From positions 168,938-232,937 of the IMG/VR virus record IMGVR_UViG_3300043411_000942: a stretch of DNA of 64,000 bases. One strand, given 5' to 3'. The stretch's first letter is position 1; each line of letters begins with the position of its first letter. This document shows positions 48,459 through 57,726 of this stretch, in pieces. Position numbers and translations under genes: made by a program. The notes beneath the pieces are model-generated. The model made no database searches. It was not told the origin of the DNA and was given only the letters and a program-made list of their open reading frames with translations.

Positions 48459-48740
48459 ATGGACCCTCTAATTTGGAAAACTGCGGATGCTCAGAAAGTG
48501 GTCGCTGACCAGTGGCGAGACGCTTTACGTAAGTTACAGGTTAGACTACTAGCTGCGGAGGCTGAAGCAAAGTCCCTTTCGGATATGATGCGAGGCTCTT
48601 TGGACATGGGGGACGTTCTCTCGAAGAGGGTGTTACCCCCAAATGCCGTAAAGCAGGTATCTGATATCTGGAAGCAGACTTCGGACTTGAGTAATCAGGT
48701 CCAAGAAATTTCAAAAAAGCTAATAGCTGTACGGGGTTAG
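48459..48740 (+). CDS. Small coiled-coil protein
   Basis: Starts MDPLIWKTADAQ, like MNWKTSADATQ of 62288. Confidence 0.6.
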   Translation: MDPLIWKTADAQKVVADQWRDALRKLQVRLLAAEAEAKSLSDMMRGSLDMGDVLSKRVLPPNAVKQVSDIWKQTSDLSNQVQEISKKLIAVRG

Positions 48741-48776
48741 GGTCATTCCCCTAACCCCTTCTAGATGTAGAAACCG

Positions 48777-49049
48777 ATGGATAGAGAGGTGGAGCAAATG
48801 TCAAATACATTGAAAGAACGAGCGCCGTTTAGGACCCCAGACCTGTACTTTGCAGCTTACTTGCAGACAGCAGGCGTTACGATGCTGAAGTCTGAACGGG
48901 AGAACTCTCGGGTGTTCTTTGTGTTCAGTACCGAGGTTGCAGACATTGAAGAGCTGAAAACAGGTTGGTTCAACAGCACTGCAAAGATTCCAGCAATGAC
49001 GTTTGCGAACAATATCAAGTCGTTGAAGTCTGTATGTCACATGACCTAG
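48777..49049 (+). CDS. DUF5659-like protein
   Basis: FRTPDLYFAAYL...RVFFVF; alternative start at 48798. Confidence 0.6.
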   Translation: MDREVEQMSNTLKERAPFRTPDLYFAAYLQTAGVTMLKSERENSRVFFVFSTEVADIEELKTGWFNSTAKIPAMTFANNIKSLKSVCHMT

Positions 49050-49066
49050 ACTACCCCGTTCCCACC

Positions 49067-49078
49067 TAATCTACTGAT
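49067..49078 (+). promoter_or_regulatory. Candidate phage late-promoter motif TAATCTACTGAT
   Basis: Intergenic copy of the recurring motif. Confidence 0.4.
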
Positions 49079-49122
49079 AACCTAGTATGTGTGGTGGGAG
49101 TGACCCTTAGGAGAGCACGAAC

Positions 49123-49719
49123 ATGGCTGATCATGCGGTTGACGCAACTTTAGCGGGAGATTCCACTCAGGTGGCGGATGCGGTCATGCTATATGCTGGA
49201 GGGGCAGTAGCTGTAACTGGAGCGGCTGACCTTGTAGCTCCTAACCTACTCTGGGAACTAGGTACAACGCCTCTAGTAGGCGATGCCTCCGTGGCATCGG
49301 ACTTCATTCTTTCTCTTGCAATTGACTCCTCCTTCGGGGGTGGGGCAGACGTCACGGCCCCAAATCTACTTGCATGTATGGATGCCACCCTTACGGGTGG
49401 GGCTGACCTGACTGCCTCCTTCACAATTCTTTTGAGTGCTGCTCTACTCGCAGACGGCTCAGGTTTGACTGTTGGAGACCTACTCACTATCTATGGAGTT
49501 AGTGCGGCATTGGAAGGTGTCGCAGACTTCCCTCAGGTCGAGCTAACTCTGATGGCACACCCTGGGACAGTGGCTACTAAGCCCATTGCAAACTCGGGAG
49601 CCACTCTTCAACAATTCATTGATGCGACTGGCTCTAGTAAGGCTTCTCAGAAAACTCAGCCCGTTAGCCACCCTGTGGTCGACCCAAACCCACCCAAGAA
49701 ACCTTTTGCACCACGTTAA
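49123..49719 (+). CDS. Ala/Gly/Asp-rich repeat virion protein
   Basis: M.DHAVDA.L.GD N-terminus shared with 50270; repeated L.G.AD units. Confidence 0.7.
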   Translation: MADHAVDATLAGDSTQVADAVMLYAGGAVAVTGAADLVAPNLLWELGTTPLVGDASVASDFILSLAIDSSFGGGADVTAPNLLACMDATLTGGADLTASFTILLSAALLADGSGLTVGDLLTIYGVSAALEGVADFPQVELTLMAHPGTVATKPIANSGATLQQFIDATGSSKASQKTQPVSHPVVDPNPPKKPFAPR

Positions 49720-49732
49720 GTAGGAGAAAACA

Positions 49733-50131
49733 ATGACTGCTAAGACTGACTATTTGGAGCTTCGTGTTCTTGACCGTGTTCTAAAGAACAACGCTCAATT
49801 CGTGTACTCTTTCCCAGCAACTGTGTATGCTTCGCTACACACTGCTGACCCAACAGATACTGGCTCTCTAGCAGCGGAAGCTGCTGGTGGCTCGTATGCC
49901 CGCGTTGCAATCAGCTGGGGTACCATCGCTTCGGGTTCGGTCGCGAACTCGTCCGCGATCACCTTCCCAGTTGCAACGGGAGCCTGGGGTACGATCACCC
50001 ACGTTGGTATCTGCGATGCGTTGACCACGGGTAACATGCTCTACAAGGGAGCCCTTGGTACCTCTAAGGTCGTTGGTAACGGCGACCAGGTCAGTTTCGC
50101 AATCGGAGCGCTAACTGTCTCTGAGGGGTGA
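49733..50131 (+). CDS. Phage tail/fibre-associated protein
   Basis: VYASLHTADP, SYARV, ITFP.A...WGTITH.GI.DA.T.GN.LY pattern common in phage virion proteins. Confidence 0.7.
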   Translation: MTAKTDYLELRVLDRVLKNNAQFVYSFPATVYASLHTADPTDTGSLAAEAAGGSYARVAISWGTIASGSVANSSAITFPVATGAWGTITHVGICDALTTGNMLYKGALGTSKVVGNGDQVSFAIGALTVSEG

Positions 50132-50149
50132 TTCTACCCTTTGGTTAGC

Positions 50150-50201
50150 ACCAAAAGCAGGAAACCATTCTGGGAAACCGGGATGGTTTTTTGCTTTTGG
50201 T
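50150..50201 (+). terminator. Long hairpin/terminator
   Basis: ACCAAAAGCAGGAAACCATTCTGG-GAAA-CCGGGATGGTTTTTTGCTTTTGGT. Confidence 0.7.
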
Positions 50202-50269
50202 ACCACCCATTAAACGTCTTATTCTTTCTGGTAGATGTCGGGTTGTTCGAGCTACTTCGGAGGTAACTA

Positions 50270-51355
50270 GTGGTTGATCATGCTGTCGATGCGAGCCTTC
50301 TTGGGGATGCTTCGGTAACCTCTGAGGCAGTTGCCATTTACGCCCTAGCCTCCTCCCCTACAGGGGATGCTACTCTTGGGGTAGTAGACCCTACTATTCA
50401 ATGGGCACTTGGGTCATCTCTTGCAGGAGATGCTACTCTTGGAGTAGTAGACCCTACCGTACAGTGGGCGCTTAATGCCTCCTTAGATGGAAGTGCTGAC
50501 GTTCTGATCATTCAGAATTTCCATGCAGTAGATGCTACACTTAGCGGGGATGCCGCACTAACAGCTAGCCTTACTGCTCAATGGGCGTTGGGTACATTGT
50601 CCCTCGATGCCGGAGCCACCCTTGGTGTAGTGGACCCTACAATCCAATGGGCGGTCGCAGCGACCCTTCTTGCAGATGGCACACTAGGGGTTGTAGACCC
50701 TACCCTACAAGGCGCCTTGGCCGCTACTCTATCGGGAGACGCCACCGTAACCTCTGATCTTGCCGGACAGTATCCGCTTGTCGTAACGTTCGCTGGGTCT
50801 GGGGACTTTGTTGCGACAATCCTACAGAACCCACTATTCGCAAGCCTAGATGCGTCTGCGGACCTGACAGCAGTACCTACCATGGTACTCTCCCCTTCGG
50901 CAATCCTGATTGGAGATGCATCGGTCACCTCCGCCCTGAACGTTTTCGTGGGTCCGGTTACAGCTCTGCGCTACGGGGTCCCAAGTAGGCGAGCTGAGGC
51001 GTCCAAGGTAGTCTTCGATCAACTAGACTTGTTCCTTGCAGACGGTAAGACTAGGGCCCAAGATGTTCCTGTCTCAGCTCTCTACCTCAGAGTCTACGTC
51101 AATGGTACACAGGCTGACTGGCCCTTGGTGTCAGGGGCTGGAGTCACGGATGTGCAGATCGCTGCGGGTAAGGTCTACTGGACGGAGTTCTCTACCGGGT
51201 TCTACAGTGTTCGATTCTTCCCCAACCAGATCGGTATCTGGCGGGTAATCCTGACCTACCCAATCTACGACCAAGCTGTATCGCTAAGCTATGATGTGGT
51301 ACCTCAAGTTGGGTTCCCAGGTGGTCTAGGTCTAAGGTCTTCTTTCATAGGTTGA
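50270..51355 (+). CDS. Repeat-rich virion protein
   Basis: Four TLGVVDPT(I/V/L)Q(W/G)A units; paralog of 49123. Confidence 0.75.
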   Translation: MVDHAVDASLLGDASVTSEAVAIYALASSPTGDATLGVVDPTIQWALGSSLAGDATLGVVDPTVQWALNASLDGSADVLIIQNFHAVDATLSGDAALTASLTAQWALGTLSLDAGATLGVVDPTIQWAVAATLLADGTLGVVDPTLQGALAATLSGDATVTSDLAGQYPLVVTFAGSGDFVATILQNPLFASLDASADLTAVPTMVLSPSAILIGDASVTSALNVFVGPVTALRYGVPSRRAEASKVVFDQLDLFLADGKTRAQDVPVSALYLRVYVNGTQADWPLVSGAGVTDVQIAAGKVYWTEFSTGFYSVRFFPNQIGIWRVILTYPIYDQAVSLSYDVVPQVGFPGGLGLRSSFIG

Positions 51356-51361
51356 GGGGAA

Positions 51362-51553
51362 ATGTCACATCAACTATTACAGGTCATTGATTGCGAGCAA
51401 ACAAGGGAAATTCGGTATGTGGATAACACCTTGATACCTAGCAGTCATATCAACAACTTCTTAAAGGTGATCAGCCCATCCGGTAAGGAGTACACTCTTC
51501 AGTGCTCAGAGGACCTCCTTGAGGAGTTGTTCCCAAGCCCAGTAGAGACTTGA
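51362..51553 (+). CDS. Small hypothetical protein
   Basis: GAGGGG RBS; 63 aa. Confidence 0.5.
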   Translation: MSHQLLQVIDCEQTREIRYVDNTLIPSSHINNFLKVISPSGKEYTLQCSEDLLEELFPSPVET

Positions 51554-51586
51554 TGCTCACCCTAGCCAACAAGGAATGGTAACTCT

Positions 51587-52066
51587 ATGGCCTTCCCAGG
51601 AGTGTTCAAACGAGGCTATATCTTCCAAAGAGGAGATCTACCTCTCTTCATTACGGACTCTAGTGGGAATGCGACCAACCCTTACAAGGTGACGTTCACT
51701 CTCTACTACCGTGCAGGTAATAGTCCGTGTGAGCTTCAGGTTGGACCTATAGACCGAACCCCCGTTCAAGCTAAGATTGGGGAGTACTATGTCTCTGGGG
51801 TTGCTGGGGAGTGCGGTCAGCCGGGCCAGTGGTACGTAGAGTGGAAGTACCAGGAGTCTTTCGGGTCTCAGTGGGTGTCCGATAAGATGGGGTTCAGTGT
51901 GTTTGAGACGACCCAATTCGCACCAGTAACCTACACAAGTTACCCTTGCGGCTGTGGAAACTCTTCGGGATGTGGATGCACGATTGCCAACCCCCGTGGA
52001 GGGTGTCAGTGGGGCTGTCGAAACTCTTGTCTCCAAGTGTCCTCTTGCGGAAAGTATGGGTGGTGA
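51587..52066 (+). CDS. Virion protein with Cys/Gly-rich tail; paralog of the 52070 N-extein
   Basis: RG....R.DL.LF.T..SG...N, RTP.....GEYY and W..QE..G are shared with 52070. Confidence 0.7.
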   Translation: MAFPGVFKRGYIFQRGDLPLFITDSSGNATNPYKVTFTLYYRAGNSPCELQVGPIDRTPVQAKIGEYYVSGVAGECGQPGQWYVEWKYQESFGSQWVSDKMGFSVFETTQFAPVTYTSYPCGCGNSSGCGCTIANPRGGCQWGCRNSCLQVSSCGKYGW

Positions 52067-52069
52067 GTC

Positions 52070-52549
52070 ATGGGCGTAGGTCTTCTTAGGGGTCAGCAGT
52101 TGGGTAGGGAGGACTTGAACCTTTTCCTGACCAATGCTTCCGGACACCCCGTCAATGCAGCAGAGATAAGCTACGCTATCTACGACTTCACTACTGGACT
52201 AGAGGTCTTGGTTGGGAGCAATCAGCGAACCCCTCTAAATCCAACAGTAGGGGAGTACTACGCGAGTATCATTATCCCTTTGGATGCGAACTTGGGTGAG
52301 TACCGTATACGTTGGGCAATCCAAGAGCTAATTGGTGGCCCACTCCAGACCGTAGTTCAAGAGTTTAGCGTTCAAGACCGAGATATGGTCATGCCAACGT
52401 GCTTCACTCCTACTCAAACAGACCTGATTCGCAGATTGCGAATGGTTCTCAGAGACCAGTGTGTCGGAGGTGAGGAGCTTGTTGAGTTAGATGTGGATGG
52501 TGAACTTATGCTTGTTAGATTGGACGAGCTTTGGGGGGCTATTCAGTGA
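52070..52549 (+). CDS. N-terminal part of a fractured virion (neck/head-completion-like) gene: 130-aa N-extein + IntN
   Basis: Ends LRDQ|CVGGEELVELDVDGELMLVRLDELWGAIQ*, an intein block A-like segment. Confidence 0.85.
   Translation: MGVGLLRGQQLGREDLNLFLTNASGHPVNAAEISYAIYDFTTGLEVLVGSNQRTPLNPTVGEYYASIIIPLDANLGEYRIRWAIQELIGGPLQTVVQEFSVQDRDMVMPTCFTPTQTDLIRRLRMVLRDQCVGGEELVELDVDGELMLVRLDELWGAIQ
52460..52546 (+). mobile_element. Split intein N-fragment (29 aa)
   Basis: Cys1 with C-h-x-G-E-x-x-V pattern and v.l.EL(W) motif; 8 acidic residues versus 1 basic. Confidence 0.8.
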
Positions 52550-53433
52550 CGGTTCTCCTCCAATTATTGGCAAAGCATGGTATCAGTTTAGATGCCTTCG
52601 TAAAGAAAGGTCGTCCCCCACTGGGAGTTAGGGAGAAGAGGGCTTTAATTGTCACGGAGCTACACCTATCTGGGTACTCTTGGGCCGAGATGTGTCAAAT
52701 CACTGGATTAGGTAATGCTGCTATTCAGAACCTATCTAGAGCAAAGGGGTGCGCTGCGGTAGTTAGAAAACGCAAGGAACTAGGTAGGAATGTTGGGTTG
52801 TCTTGGGCTGGTAATACAAGACCAGGTCAGTTAGAGAAGCAGTGGGCTAGAGGGGATTTCGACCGGCTTAGGGGCCGTATTAGACCAAAAGAAGAGAGAG
52901 CAGCTTTAGTTCGTGGTTGGACTCCAGAGAAACGAGCAGCAGCGTCAGTACGAAGTTTGAAGTTATGGCAAAGTCCAAAAGTTAGGGGTCACCTATTAGG
53001 TTTTCACCGTGACCCACTTGAGCGTAGTAGACGATCGAAGTTGCAAGTTGTGCGCATGCTCCAAACTCCTACAACCTACCTAAGGGGTAAGTTTGATTGG
53101 GTACCTACCCCAAAAGGGATAAGCTCCAAAGCAAGAGTTCGGTCGTCCTATGAAGCTGCGGCAATATCTGTACTTGAGGCTGATGTAACGGTAGCTAAGT
53201 ACAGCTATGAGTTAGTCTTTATGGTTGAAGGTGGTAGGTGGATAATACCCGACTTCCTTGTAGAGTACTCAACTGGAATTACAACTCTAGTTGAGGTAAA
53301 AGCGTCTTGGGTTTTGAGTCTGCCGAGTGATCACAAGGTTAAGCAAAGACTTGAGTTATCCCGTCGACTAGCTGAGCAGAACAACTGGCACTTCGAGATT
53401 TGGACAGAAAAGGAGCTGCGTAATGCTCTCTGA
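52546..53433 (+). CDS. Free-standing TnsA-like PD-(D/E)XK endonuclease between the intein halves
   Basis: Start moved to GTG 52546 (GTGA overlap); N-terminal HTH, basic linker, RSSYE, PDFLVEY, LVEVKA, W.FEIWTEKEL. Confidence 0.8.
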   Translation: MTVLLQLLAKHGISLDAFVKKGRPPLGVREKRALIVTELHLSGYSWAEMCQITGLGNAAIQNLSRAKGCAAVVRKRKELGRNVGLSWAGNTRPGQLEKQWARGDFDRLRGRIRPKEERAALVRGWTPEKRAAASVRSLKLWQSPKVRGHLLGFHRDPLERSRRSKLQVVRMLQTPTTYLRGKFDWVPTPKGISSKARVRSSYEAAAISVLEADVTVAKYSYELVFMVEGGRWIIPDFLVEYSTGITTLVEVKASWVLSLPSDHKVKQRLELSRRLAEQNNWHFEIWTEKELRNAL

Positions 53434-53818
53434 TATACAACGAAGTAGGGTAAGGGCGGCCTTTACTGTAGGAAAGCTCAAGGTCAGATCCGTATCCCCT
53501 AGCGGGAGTATGGAATGGAAACGGGTTGTTGATGTGCAACGAGCTGAAGTCCCATGGGAGACTATCTACGAAGTAAGCTCAGACTTAGGATCAATGGTTT
53601 TGACTAGTGGTCACCGAGTTTTCACTTCTCCTGTAACCAAGACGGAAACTTCGAAACTTTGCCATGGGGTAAGATTACTGTCCGTGGTAGGCAGTTTAGT
53701 TAGTTCCTCAACCGTGGTAAGTGTGCAACAGATTGCTAGCCGACAGTTCATGTACGACTTAACAGCTGAAGATTGGCATAACTTTGTGCTATTTAGGTCT
53801 AAGAGTGTCATTAGCAAC
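53423..53818 (+). mobile_element. Split intein C-fragment (132 aa, no endonuclease domain)
   Basis: Has blocks B, F and G but no block A; terminal Asn followed by Ser. Confidence 0.85.
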
Positions 53819-54319
53819 TCCCCTGACAAGTTTTACAAGTTCCGGCCTCCAGCTCATGAGGAAACGGTCAACCAATTCAGTCGGGTGTTTGGTTATATCT
53901 GGGAGGACGCAGAGTTGCTAGAGTATCTTGAGAGGTCTCTAGACATGATCATTGCGTCCCCTCCTAGGACCCCATTCAATGGCATTGACCAGATGACTCA
54001 GATCCGACCAGAGTGGAGGACGCTCCTCATCACGGGTGGGATGTTCTGGGCACTTCAAGCCCTGCAAATTAACTGGACGGCAGATGAGTTCTCGTACTCG
54101 ATCGGCGGGATCTCCCTAGACTTAGACAAGTCAAGTAAGTATGACACCCTGAAACAAGGTGCAAGCGACCAGTTCGATAAGCAACTTGAGAAGGCCAAAG
54201 CGACCGTCAAGTTCATCAAGGGGCTACAGCAGCCTAAGTACGGGATGGGCGTGCGCAGCGCCTTCGGCCCGTTCCAAAGTAGGGGCGCTATATCTCCGCG
54301 AAAATTCATGGGAATTTAG
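53423..54319 (+). CDS. C-terminal part of the fractured gene: 132-aa IntC + 166-aa C-extein
   Basis: AGGAG RBS; block B LTSGHRVF, block F MYDLTAEDWHNFVL, block G VISN|S; extein SPDKFYKFRPP...DEFSYSIGGISLDLDKSSKY. Confidence 0.88.
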   Translation: MLSDIQRSRVRAAFTVGKLKVRSVSPSGSMEWKRVVDVQRAEVPWETIYEVSSDLGSMVLTSGHRVFTSPVTKTETSKLCHGVRLLSVVGSLVSSSTVVSVQQIASRQFMYDLTAEDWHNFVLFRSKSVISNSPDKFYKFRPPAHEETVNQFSRVFGYIWEDAELLEYLERSLDMIIASPPRTPFNGIDQMTQIRPEWRTLLITGGMFWALQALQINWTADEFSYSIGGISLDLDKSSKYDTLKQGASDQFDKQLEKAKATVKFIKGLQQPKYGMGVRSAFGPFQSRGAISPRKFMGI

Positions 54320-54337
54320 TTTTTCACCGTATCGAGG

Positions 54338-54366
54338 TTGACTTTTCCGTTGTGCCGATCCATACT
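54338..54366 (+). promoter_or_regulatory. Sigma70-type promoter, leaderless, for the downstream endonuclease
   Basis: TTGACT-17 nt-CATACT; ATG 54374 follows 7 nt later. Confidence 0.6.
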
Positions 54367-54373
54367 TAGGTCA

Positions 54374-55762
54374 ATGCCAAATAAGGGTCGTTGTGCCTGT
54401 CCTGCGTGTGGGAAGAACCTAGCCCCAAAGAGTATTCACGCTCACACTCTTGAGTGCGTTGATTGGAAGACAAAGTACGGTGACCCGTACCCGTACTTCA
54501 AGTTCAATGGTACCCCACACCAATACTCTGACGTAGCTCAGGAGGGCATTGACTATGTTCGATGTCGAGTGTGTCTTGAGTATGGGTGGGACTTTCGGTT
54601 CAAGCGCATGATGGATCACCTTAAAGGGGTCCACGGTCTTAGTGAGGCTCAGTATCTGCTGAGGTTCCCTGCGGCTCTAGTAAGGTTGCAGTCTACCCTA
54701 AGTAAGAGGCAGGGAACGGTACAGGGTAGGTTTGGAGTTAGTAACGTTTTTCAAGCTGACGTAGTTAAAGCTAAGTCCAAAGCTTCTTTGCTTGAGCGTC
54801 ATGGGGTAACCAGTCCGATTCAAGCTAGTTCGGTACGAGCAAAGATCGATGCTACGAATCTTGCTCGTTACGGGGTGACTAACCCTTTTGCCTCCTCAGA
54901 GGTGAAACAACGCATTCGAGCCACCAACCTAGAGCGATTCGGCGTCGAGAACCCTAACCAAGCTCCTGAAATTATACAACAACGTATAGCTACTAACCAG
55001 GAGCGGTACGGTGCAGATCACTATCTTGAGACTCCCGAGTTCAAAGAGAAGTTCAAGGCAACTTCTTTGGAGAGGTACGGCACTGTGCATCCTATGCAGT
55101 CCCCAGAGGGTAGGTTACCTTGTGAGACTAGTATGCTTGCTAGTCTTGGTGTTACCTACCCATTTCGATCTGATGCTGTACAAAGTAAGGCCTACGCAAC
55201 ATCCGTTGCGAACCATGGGGGGCAGCACCATCTCTCAGACCCAGCAATCATTGAGGCACGGAAGCAGCACCTAATGGAGCTTTACGGAGTTGACAACATC
55301 TCTAAGGTACCAGCGGTTAAAGAGAGGATCATCGCCAAGATTAAGGAGCGGTTTCGAGACGGAGCTATCCCACGAATTACGACTCCAGAGAGGGTATTTA
55401 GAGACCTTGTACCTGAGCGTGTGGTGTATTCTGGGGACTTTGAGTACTGGGTAACGTGGGCAAATGGGAGACGTAAGAATCCTGACTTTGTGGTACTAAC
55501 CGAGGAGCAGTACGCAGCGTATAGGGCTGGGGTCCCTTTGGGAGACCTACGGACCTACCTTGTGGTTGAGGTCAATGGTGTTTGGTGGCATACTAAGCAC
55601 AAGAACATGACGCGCGAGGCTAGGGAGAAAGAGTTTGTAGACGGCTACGCTTCAGTTGGTGTGAGTTGTTTGGTTGTTTGGGAGGACGATCTAGAAACCA
55701 AACCAGAGTCTATTCAGCAGCAGGTCAGCGCGTTTCTTGTGCAACCGAAGGTTAGAGGTTAA
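54374..55762 (+). CDS. Homing-endonuclease-like protein: Zn fingers, (Y/F)GV.NP repeats, Vsr/DUF559-like nuclease
   Basis: CxxC..H...C and CxxC...H...H fingers; repeats such as TNLERFGVENP; C-terminal NPDF, VEVNGVWWH, LVVWEDDL. Confidence 0.8.
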   Translation: MPNKGRCACPACGKNLAPKSIHAHTLECVDWKTKYGDPYPYFKFNGTPHQYSDVAQEGIDYVRCRVCLEYGWDFRFKRMMDHLKGVHGLSEAQYLLRFPAALVRLQSTLSKRQGTVQGRFGVSNVFQADVVKAKSKASLLERHGVTSPIQASSVRAKIDATNLARYGVTNPFASSEVKQRIRATNLERFGVENPNQAPEIIQQRIATNQERYGADHYLETPEFKEKFKATSLERYGTVHPMQSPEGRLPCETSMLASLGVTYPFRSDAVQSKAYATSVANHGGQHHLSDPAIIEARKQHLMELYGVDNISKVPAVKERIIAKIKERFRDGAIPRITTPERVFRDLVPERVVYSGDFEYWVTWANGRRKNPDFVVLTEEQYAAYRAGVPLGDLRTYLVVEVNGVWWHTKHKNMTREAREKEFVDGYASVGVSCLVVWEDDLETKPESIQQQVSAFLVQPKVRG

Positions 55763-57043: not shown

Positions 57044-57250
57044 GTGATGGAGCAATCTACGCTAATGTGCCCCCAGCATCCCGAGGAAGGACTCCTCAGG
57101 GAAGAGTACGGACCTGATGGTCGAACAGGGTTTTGCCTTAAGTGCTTACAGCATTACAAGCTCTGCAACGCTGTCCAGTACATGAGTAAATGCAATGACC
57201 TCCTAGGGCACCCTGGGAAGCATGTTGATAGTCGGGGGTCCAGATGGTAA
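57044..57250 (+). CDS. Small Cys/His-rich protein
   Basis: CPQH, CLKC, C....GHPGKH. Confidence 0.55.
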   Translation: MMEQSTLMCPQHPEEGLLREEYGPDGRTGFCLKCLQHYKLCNAVQYMSKCNDLLGHPGKHVDSRGSRW

Positions 57251-57726
57251 AGCATGACGATCTTCAGGTAATCGAGTTCTACAGCCCCAGCAATGCCTAT
57301 GGGGCCTTTTCCAACTTCTCTAAGCACGCAGTGAGTCTTGACGGGAAGACTTGGCCTACGTCGGAGCATTACTTTCAGGCGATGAAGTTTGAGGGCACTC
57401 CAGTCGAAAGTATTGTGCGTAAGGCCTATAGCGCTGGGGAAGCTGCTAGAATTGGCCGTGACCGAAGTAACCCACTCCGTAAAGACTGGGAGGCAGTCAA
57501 GCATGATGTAATGCGTAGAGTTATTTACGCAAAATTCACACAGCATAATGACCTTCGTAAGCTACTACTCTCCACTGGGGACAAAAAGCTTGTTGAGCAC
57601 ACTGAAAAGGATAGCTACTGGGGAGACGGAGGGGATGGGTCTGGGGGGAACATGCTGGGGTTAATCTTGATGGAGACCCGAACTCGCATTAGAATTATGG
57701 CCAACGCACACACACTTGAAGAGTGA
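57244..57726 (+). CDS. NADAR (YbiA-like) family protein
   Basis: FSNF, WPTSEHYFQAMKF, DWE.VK..VM, AKFTQH..L...LLSTG, D.YWG, G.NMLG.ILM. Confidence 0.92.
   Translation: MVKHDDLQVIEFYSPSNAYGAFSNFSKHAVSLDGKTWPTSEHYFQAMKFEGTPVESIVRKAYSAGEAARIGRDRSNPLRKDWEAVKHDVMRRVIYAKFTQHNDLRKLLLSTGDKKLVEHTEKDSYWGDGGDGSGGNMLGLILMETRTRIRIMANAHTLEE

Follow-up and report, generated by a model that had tools for sequence, protein, structure and literature searches.

How a gene that is cut in two by another gene can still give one protein is the question raised by a locus in a 64,000-nucleotide stretch of DNA (hereafter the window) from the 233 kb contig IMGVR_UViG_3300043411_000942. Within window positions 52070-54319, three open reading frames (ORFs) lie on the plus strand: the first encodes the N-terminal part of a host protein (N-extein) followed by the N-terminal fragment of a split intein (IntN), the second a PD-(D/E)xK endonuclease and the third the C-terminal intein fragment (IntC) followed by the rest of the host protein (C-extein). 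We consider it very likely that positions 52460-53818 form a mobile intein cassette in which a class-1 Hint domain is broken after about 29 residues by a homing endonuclease gene, and that the two halves trans-splice into a 296-amino-acid (aa) protein of a jumbo phage.

The first ORF (52070..52549) encodes 159 aa. Its first 130 residues (52070..52459) constitute the N-extein, a predicted beta-sandwich domain plus a helix with LRDQ at the C-terminal end, and these are followed by a 29-aa tail with Cys as first residue. This tail is the putative IntN (52460..52549, made up of 29 codons at 52460-52546 and the TGA stop at 52547-52549) and it contains only block A/N1. The free-standing endonuclease gene (52546..53433; 295 aa when read from the GTG at 52546) shares bases with this stop codon, since GTG 52546-52548 and the TGA overlap in the sequence GTGA. 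The third ORF (53423..54319, 298 aa) starts with an ATG at 53423 that is preceded by 7 nt by a Shine-Dalgarno-like AAGGAG (53410-53415) within the 3' end of the endonuclease gene, and it overlaps the endonuclease ORF, whose stop codon is at 53431-53433, by 11 nt. Its first 132 residues form IntC (53423..53818), with the motifs TSGH (block B, T61 and H64), MYDLTAEDWHNF and VISN, where D112 belongs to block F and S131-N132 end block G, and with an additional N-terminal helix (residues 4-15). Thereafter come SPDKFY and a further 160 residues, which make up the 166-aa C-extein (53819..54319 including the stop), a predicted helical domain with Ser as the +1 residue. IntN carries a net charge of -7, and residues 1-25 of IntC one of +5. 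The ORF anatomy, block assignments, GTGA overlap, ribosome binding site and charges given in the initial annotation could all be read directly in the sequence, and the overlaps at both ends of the endonuclease gene that its claim of translational coupling involved are present. No promoter- or terminator-like sites were found inside the cassette or the host gene, and the sole promoter-like match (54338-54366) lies downstream of the host gene, at the start of a downstream endonuclease gene.

A scan of IMG/VR gave 80 loci, and the five parts of the locus were mapped onto all of them. The relatives, on contigs of up to 619 kb, are jumbo phages. In 66 of the loci, representing 56 distinct proteins, the host gene is uninterrupted. 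One of these, L007, carries an intact gene of exactly 296 aa with the junction LRDQ-N-PDKFY and lacks precisely the 1359 nt (window 52460-53818) that comprise IntN, endonuclease and IntC, the nucleotide identity of the flanks being 90-100%. The N-extein of the window is 99% identical to L007:4611-5000 and the C-extein 98% identical to L007:5001-5498. At the +1 position L007 has the codon AAC (Asn) directly after CAG, and the window has TCC (Ser), separated from CAG by the cassette. Substitutions relative to L007 crowd near the junction (13 in 53 nt, P = 5e-4), which would fit co-conversion of the flanks or adaptation of the target site. A contiguous homologue is also present in a cultured phage: the 283-aa gp319 of Tunturiibacter phage Tunturi_5 is intein-free and matches both exteins across the junction, with the N-extein alignable to its residues 6-114. 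The spliced product proposed in the initial annotation is matched by full-length intein-free homologues at 66 loci, in the case of L007 with 98-99% identity in both exteins. No match among GenBank phages was obtained when the locus was searched by blastn, and relatives were found by protein-level searches only.

The similarity to L007 varies along the window. Upstream of the host gene (48470-52069) identity is mostly 93-100%; within the host gene and over most of the endonuclease gene that follows it, the values are lower, at about 87-94%, and no similarity is left beyond ~56200. A profile of this kind suggests tracts of recombination with nuclease genes at their borders.

The IntN and IntC pieces were searched separately and not as a joined sequence. 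A profile built from 13 IntC homologues matched only inteins in the PDB, the best being M. jannaschii KlbA (3.7e-12) and P. horikoshii RadA (3.8e-12), with further matches to the TFIIB, CDC21, DnaX, DnaE, NrdJ-1 and Aes123 PolB1 inteins. In this search the stretch of the Npu DnaE intein that aligned with IntC residues 20-132 was 31/32-139/140. Given that the alignment begins at about residue 30 of the Hint domain, IntC lacks approximately the first 30 Hint residues, which is close to the size of IntN. The AlphaFold (AF2) model of IntC had a pLDDT of 95.5 and a pTM of 0.86, and the top 50 PDB structures found with it by Foldseek were all intein/Hint structures, most with a TM score of about 0.7. 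The Hint identity that had been proposed is thus borne out by both profile and model, which match inteins and Hint structures only. A single-sequence PDB search with IntC gave marginal matches only (E 0.3).

Residues T61, H64, D112 and N132 are invariant across the 13 IntC sequences, and Cys1 (52460-52462, directly after LRDQ) is kept in 10/10 IntN fragments of split loci as well as in contiguous forms of the intein. The Cys1/Ser+1 pair and the non-canonical penultimate Ser are as the initial annotation had read them; the penultimate Ser is kept in 9/10 split loci and in contiguous forms, and it is a known tolerated deviation that does not define class 1. With Cys1 in a block A pattern, T-x-x-H, blocks F and G with a terminal Asn and Ser+1, and the Hint fold, the sequence and fold features of a class-1 intein are present. 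The split is atypical, as the 29-aa IntN holds N1 only and the other motifs (B, F and G) are all in IntC.

Pfam and PHROGs gave no match for the N fragment of the window. The assignment of IntN is based on its motif pattern, the complementarity in length to IntC and the occurrence of natural contiguous forms. Its C-terminal end (LDELWGAIQ) fits a beta1-beta2-alpha1 pattern as judged from sequence, and comparison with the contiguous forms would place the break after the first helix, that is at the position termed S2 in the nomenclature of PMC13014065.

The contiguous forms were found by searching 5.8 billion proteins with the IntC region. All of the 53 proteins obtained belong to the same host family and none is informatively named. 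In several of them (P0035, P0047, P0019, P0027 and P0029, as well as P0059, P0063 and P0198 from the exhaustive search) a single chain runs from the N-extein through an IntN-like segment, a few linker residues and an IntC-like segment to the C-extein. In P0035, for example, the IntN-like segment ends in MDELWEAC and is followed by seven linker residues and NLRRAF, and the intein ends VISN/SPDRNY (here and below a slash marks the splice junction). Since both segments occur together in one protein, these sequences show that IntN and IntC jointly make up a single mini-intein, and the claim that they are fragments of a single intein is supported by contiguous mini-inteins at the same site, such as those of P0035 and P0047. 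A profile of the whole contiguous-intein proteins was less sensitive than the profile of IntC only and gave no alignment of IntN with block A.

The split arrangement was present at the same site in 10 loci, namely L004 (the contig of the window), L002 (GenBank record LR745208.1), L005, L006, L008, L009, L014, L015, L032 and L053. IntN in these loci is 29-39 aa long, always has Cys as first residue, has a net charge of -5 to -8 and follows the consensus C[VL]G..E.[VI]E.D..G...[VI]...[DE]L[WYF]. IntC is 116-132 aa long and ends in SN/S in nine loci and in HN/C in L002, where the +1 residue is Cys and not the Ser of the window; the catalytic positions are kept by the nine split loci other than the window. 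For the closest pair (L008 and L009) dN/dS was 0.06 for IntN, 0.11 for IntC and 0.06-0.10 for the exteins, a measure that was usable for this pair and a few other pair/part comparisons, as synonymous sites were saturated in most pairs. In all pairs pN was far below pS, also for the endonuclease, showing purifying selection. Collinearity with window 52705-55107, at 91% identity and with the same order of genes, was also seen in a Logan contig assembled from a different sample (SRR31616091). The recurrence in nine other loci together with this independent contig indicates that the arrangement is not due to chance, and misassembly, which had been named as a finding that would overturn the proposal, is excluded by the same observations.

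The C-terminal portion of the endonuclease encoded in the window matched Tn7_TnsA-like_N (PF08722; E 5.4e-8, 33.7 bits, cut-off 26.5), which assigns it to the TnsA-like type of PD-(D/E)xK enzymes, and its N-terminal region is helix-rich. Residues E203, P235-D236, E250 and K252, which form a classical E..PD..ExK motif, are invariant in seven endonuclease homologues. A search against PDB sequences gave no match. The PHROG label 'head closure' (phrog_218) for this protein was set aside as an artefact of family labelling, since the protein carries the nuclease motif.

The identity of the middle gene varies between loci. In most split loci it is a PD-(D/E)xK endonuclease, and in L008 (L008:4175-5011) its place is taken by an HNH endonuclease (Pfam 1.6e-9). 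In L009 there is a 119-nt remnant (L009:4882-5000) that encodes the first ~20 and the last ~10 residues of the PD-(D/E)xK protein, and in L014 a frameshifted remnant (L014:4458-5000) is fused to the IntC frame. Two further nuclease genes were noticed near the split gene. An ORF just upstream of the N fragment in LR745208.1 (L002:1006-2130), with a product ending ...LPDF...IEDTK..., looks from these motifs like a further PD-(D/E)xK endonuclease of broadly the same type. In the window, the host gene is directly followed (54338..55762, plus strand) by a second free-standing homing endonuclease gene (DUF7487; phrog_3339), which is present at the same position in the intein-free L007 (93%) and in many relatives and is sometimes duplicated (L009, L064).

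From these findings the following course of events may be proposed. The three overlapping ORFs, probably located on one transcript, would be translated into the 159-aa N-extein-IntN protein, the endonuclease and the 298-aa IntC-C-extein protein, in which the Hint domain is broken at the S2 atypical position so that its first ~29 residues (strands beta1-2 and helix alpha1) are apart from the remainder. The acidic IntN could then dock into the nearly complete, basic IntC, and Cys1, T61/H64, D112, N132 and Ser+1 would perform trans-splicing, by which the 296-aa host protein with the junction LRDQ-SPDKFY is released. During co-infection the endonuclease is expected to cut intein-free alleles such as that of L007, and repair would copy in the whole cassette, with co-conversion of the flanks and an Asn-to-Ser change at the +1 position.

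Several points weigh against this interpretation. Splicing, association of the fragments and cleavage by the endonuclease are all inferred. With IntC of the window alone, Pfam Intein_splicing (PF14890) reached 18.3 bits, which is below the curated cut-off of 35.8, and no profile tool aligned IntN to block A. Where the usual penultimate His would be expected there is a Ser, which might slow cyclisation of the Asn, and the start of the endonuclease is ambiguous between GTG 52546 and an in-frame TTG at 52531.

The penultimate Ser is also what would be expected if the intein halves had lost splicing and served merely as non-covalent association domains, the host protein then being a two-chain complex. 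There is precedent for phage proteins in separate pieces that assemble in the absence of splicing, such as the fragmented NrdA of Aeh1 described in PMC3045599. We regard this as improbable, given that Cys1, the T..H pair, the Asp, the terminal Asn and Ser or Cys at +1 are invariant over split loci that are only 28-58% identical, and that dN/dS is 0.06-0.11. In addition, contiguous forms with the same VISN/S end must cis-splice to give the host protein.

Even less probable is that a selfish insertion inactivated the host gene and that the two ORFs are halves of a decaying, tolerated pseudogene. Such a reading may draw on the host protein's lack of an assigned function and on the lack of family matches among its neighbours; it is contradicted by the extein halves being 98-99% identical to L007 in protein sequence despite a nucleotide difference of ~9% that is mostly synonymous. 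Neither half contains a frameshift or a stop, the halves are intact in all ten diverged split loci, and the gene has been kept by more than 66 related phages. As the window was derived from a metagenome assembly, one may finally ask if the intein is really contiguous, with a nested endonuclease domain, and only appears split through an assembly or sequencing artefact. This is the least probable of the explanations: the ORFs are in different frames and each has its own start codon and Shine-Dalgarno sequence, the same stops and starts are found in 10 loci from different samples, and the gene order recurs in the 91% identical Logan contig. The endonuclease is moreover probably at the S2 position, away from the canonical site of the nested domain, and its place is taken by an HNH gene in L008 and by a remnant in L009. 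The interpretation as a trans-splicing intein interrupted by a homing endonuclease gene is therefore preferred over all three.

The natural atypically split inteins named in the papers of 2023-2026 consulted here are AceL TerL, GOS TerL, VidaL and PolB16 (PMC13014065), and the short IntN fragments of this class range from about 15 to 37 aa (PMC13014065), a range that includes the 29 aa found here. The closest counterparts are the TerL inteins, for which an IntN of 25 aa and an IntC of 104 aa (AceL) and an IntN of 37 aa and an IntC of 115 aa (GOS) are given, both split at S2 (Thiel et al. 2014 and Bachmann and Mootz 2015, as cited in PMC13014065 and PMC11766414). Like these, the intein described here combines a natural short, synthesisable IntN with a long IntC, is probably split after the first helix and resides in a phage gene known from metagenomes. 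It differs in its host, which is a 296-aa, possibly virion, protein and not the large subunit of terminase, and by host it is outside the TerL family. The nucleophile pairs of the TerL inteins are Cys1/Cys+1 and Ser1/Cys+1 as opposed to Cys1/Ser+1 here, and the penultimate Ser and the additional N-terminal helix of IntC also set it apart, the TerL inteins being compared by their descriptions only. VidaL (IntN of 16 aa) and PolB16 OarG (IntN of 15 aa) are likewise natural inteins with a short IntN, and VidaL (6vgv) was among the fold matches of IntC; both are split at S1, after beta2 (PMC13014065, PMC10189870), in contrast to the probable S2 position here, they have different hosts, and VidaL matched the IntC profile only marginally (E 0.25).

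The layout of the locus was described by Dassa et al. 2009 (PMC2677866) for fractured genes, mainly of phages, in enzymes of DNA synthesis and repair and in terminase. As in those genes, an extein-IntN gene, a free-standing endonuclease gene and an IntC-extein gene follow each other on the same strand and intact homologues occur elsewhere; their gp41-7, which has no endonuclease, parallels L009. The IntN fragments of that study were 88-105 aa and all but one gene were split at the canonical site, whereas IntN here is 29 aa. The exception, a terminase locus described as 'fractured at an unusual point', has an IntC of 122 aa in which N1 is the sole motif missing (PMC2677866) and resembles the window in this respect. 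Further differences concern the endonucleases, which were GIY-YIG or Vsr-like in the earlier study as compared with TnsA-like PD-(D/E)xK here (and HNH in L008), and the spacing, with 27-51 nt of non-coding sequence before the endonuclease there and overlapping ORFs here (GTGA; 11 nt). With homing nucleases of the TnsA/Vsr fold the enzyme of the window shares the Pfam TnsA-like domain, the invariant E..PD..ExK and its location as a free-standing gene in a mobile element; it is not assigned here to the Vsr-like 'EDxHD' family (Dassa et al. 2009; I-Bth0305I), and a DUF559/Vsr-like gene is found in cassettes at another site in related phages (see below). In the literature searched for this intein family or for split inteins in jumbo phages, only a PolB case was found. 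Of the proposal in the initial annotation that this is a new atypical split intein in a new class of host, the new host protein stands, while the atypical fractured layout was already known from the terminase of Dassa et al. 2009; the locus extends a known category, with the same layout and probably the same split position, to a new host protein.

Few natural split inteins have a synthesisable IntN, and those that do are sought for labelling proteins by semisynthesis, as pairs split by nature usually outperform engineered ones. The locus adds a pair of 29 and 132 residues of the Cys1/Ser+1 type, nine further natural split variants and several one-piece forms, and Ser1-type relatives with Ser or Thr at +1 occur at two other sites of the gene in related phages. 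The set of alleles (empty, contiguous, split with two types of endonuclease, and remnant) makes the long-standing question of the birth and loss of split inteins testable, here for a split away from the canonical position and for a host protein other than an enzyme of DNA metabolism. The locus should be of value both to protein engineers and to those studying intein evolution.

Three insertion sites were distinguished in the host gene, denoted a (RD[NQ]/[SC]PD, the site occupied in the window), a2 (DRNY/[ST]F) and b (DEF/SYS). Site a2, which follows site a at a distance of six residues, was seen in protein sequences only, where the intein is framed as NPDRNY/S...AHN/[TS]FRPP; it is contiguous in P0131 and P0163, and five proteins (P0078, P0081, P0095, P0106 and P0116) start with IntC. 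Site b is at residue 92 of the C-extein (DEF/SYSIGG) and holds Ser1/Ser+1 inteins ending in AHN. These are contiguous in L015 (L015:5646-6122) and L078 (L078:5277-5849), and the intein of L015 matched Pfam Intein_splicing (PF14890) with 54.2 bits (E 1.9e-14), above the cut-off. In other loci the site-b intein is split, probably at the S2 position, with an IntN of 31-43 aa (L014:5658-6290, L032:5646-7054 and L072:5277-6733, and further L073:5379-5474, L080:5277-5375 and L083:549-650). By Pfam the intervening gene is DUF559/Vsr-like in L032, there is none in L014, and a gap of ~1 kb separates the halves in L072, L073, L080 and L083. Loci L015 and L073 are ~98-99% identical outside the host gene, and the central part of the gene gave no megablast alignment; L015 has the site-a cassette and a contiguous site-b intein, and in L073 site a is empty and the site-b intein is split, with a probable endonuclease gene between the halves. 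This difference in occupancy between otherwise nearly identical loci points to very recent gain and loss.

Whether the host gene is an unreported intein hot spot with these three insertion sites is, in our judgement, an evenly balanced question. If it is, the S2 split would arise when a free-standing endonuclease gene enters a mini-intein at its alpha1 loop and could be reverted by deletion, and the members at sites a2 and b (Ser1, Ser or Thr at +1) would be new natural members of the atypically split class, with splice junctions free of cysteine. The site-b inteins are candidates for such inteins; among natural atypically split inteins with cysteine-less junctions, PolB16 was the only one found in the 2026 literature consulted.

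In the AF2 model of the uninterrupted L007 protein (pLDDT 76), an N-terminal beta-sandwich (residues 1-102) is followed by a helix (114-127), by a linker modelled with low confidence (131-154) and by a C-terminal domain made of helices. The intein is located at the start of the linker, at a site of high sequence conservation around which R128, D129, P132, Y136, P140 and P141 are invariant. The initial annotation had referred to the split gene as a virion gene. In support of this, phrog_17327 ('head-tail connector') gave weak matches to 14/49 homologues (E 3.6e-3 for the window, 1e-4 for the best), and Foldseek against the PDB gave weak matches to a lactococcal phage baseplate protein and a siphophage portal-adaptor (E 5e-4 to 4e-3, TM ~0.2). 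Matches in BFVD were mostly unnamed phage proteins, gp165 and gp160 of phage G and BppU-N-like domains. The neighbours of the host gene in Tunturi_5 and phage G are genes of DNA metabolism, and other neighbouring genes had no family matches and were uninformative on function. By its Pfam and PHROG matches the host protein is not a terminase. Given these results, a virion role is plausible, though weakly supported, and the label of virion gene was not adopted as fact.

Immediately upstream of the host gene, a 159-aa ORF (51587..52066, plus strand) encodes a paralogue of the beta-sandwich domain of the N-extein (31% identity) with a Cys/Gly-rich C-terminal tail that contains ~10 Cys in 40 residues, and the pairing of this paralogue with the host gene is conserved in most relatives. 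Further upstream, a 361-aa ORF (50270-51355) contains at least four copies of a degenerate protein repeat, approximately GDATLGVVDPT[IV]QWAL, followed by a non-repetitive C-terminal part. Tandem Repeats Finder detected no DNA repeat in 50200-51400, and the product could be a fibre-like protein. On the other side of the locus, the ORF at 57244-57726 showed a strong match to the NADAR domain (Pfam 2.2e-39; phrog_1017).

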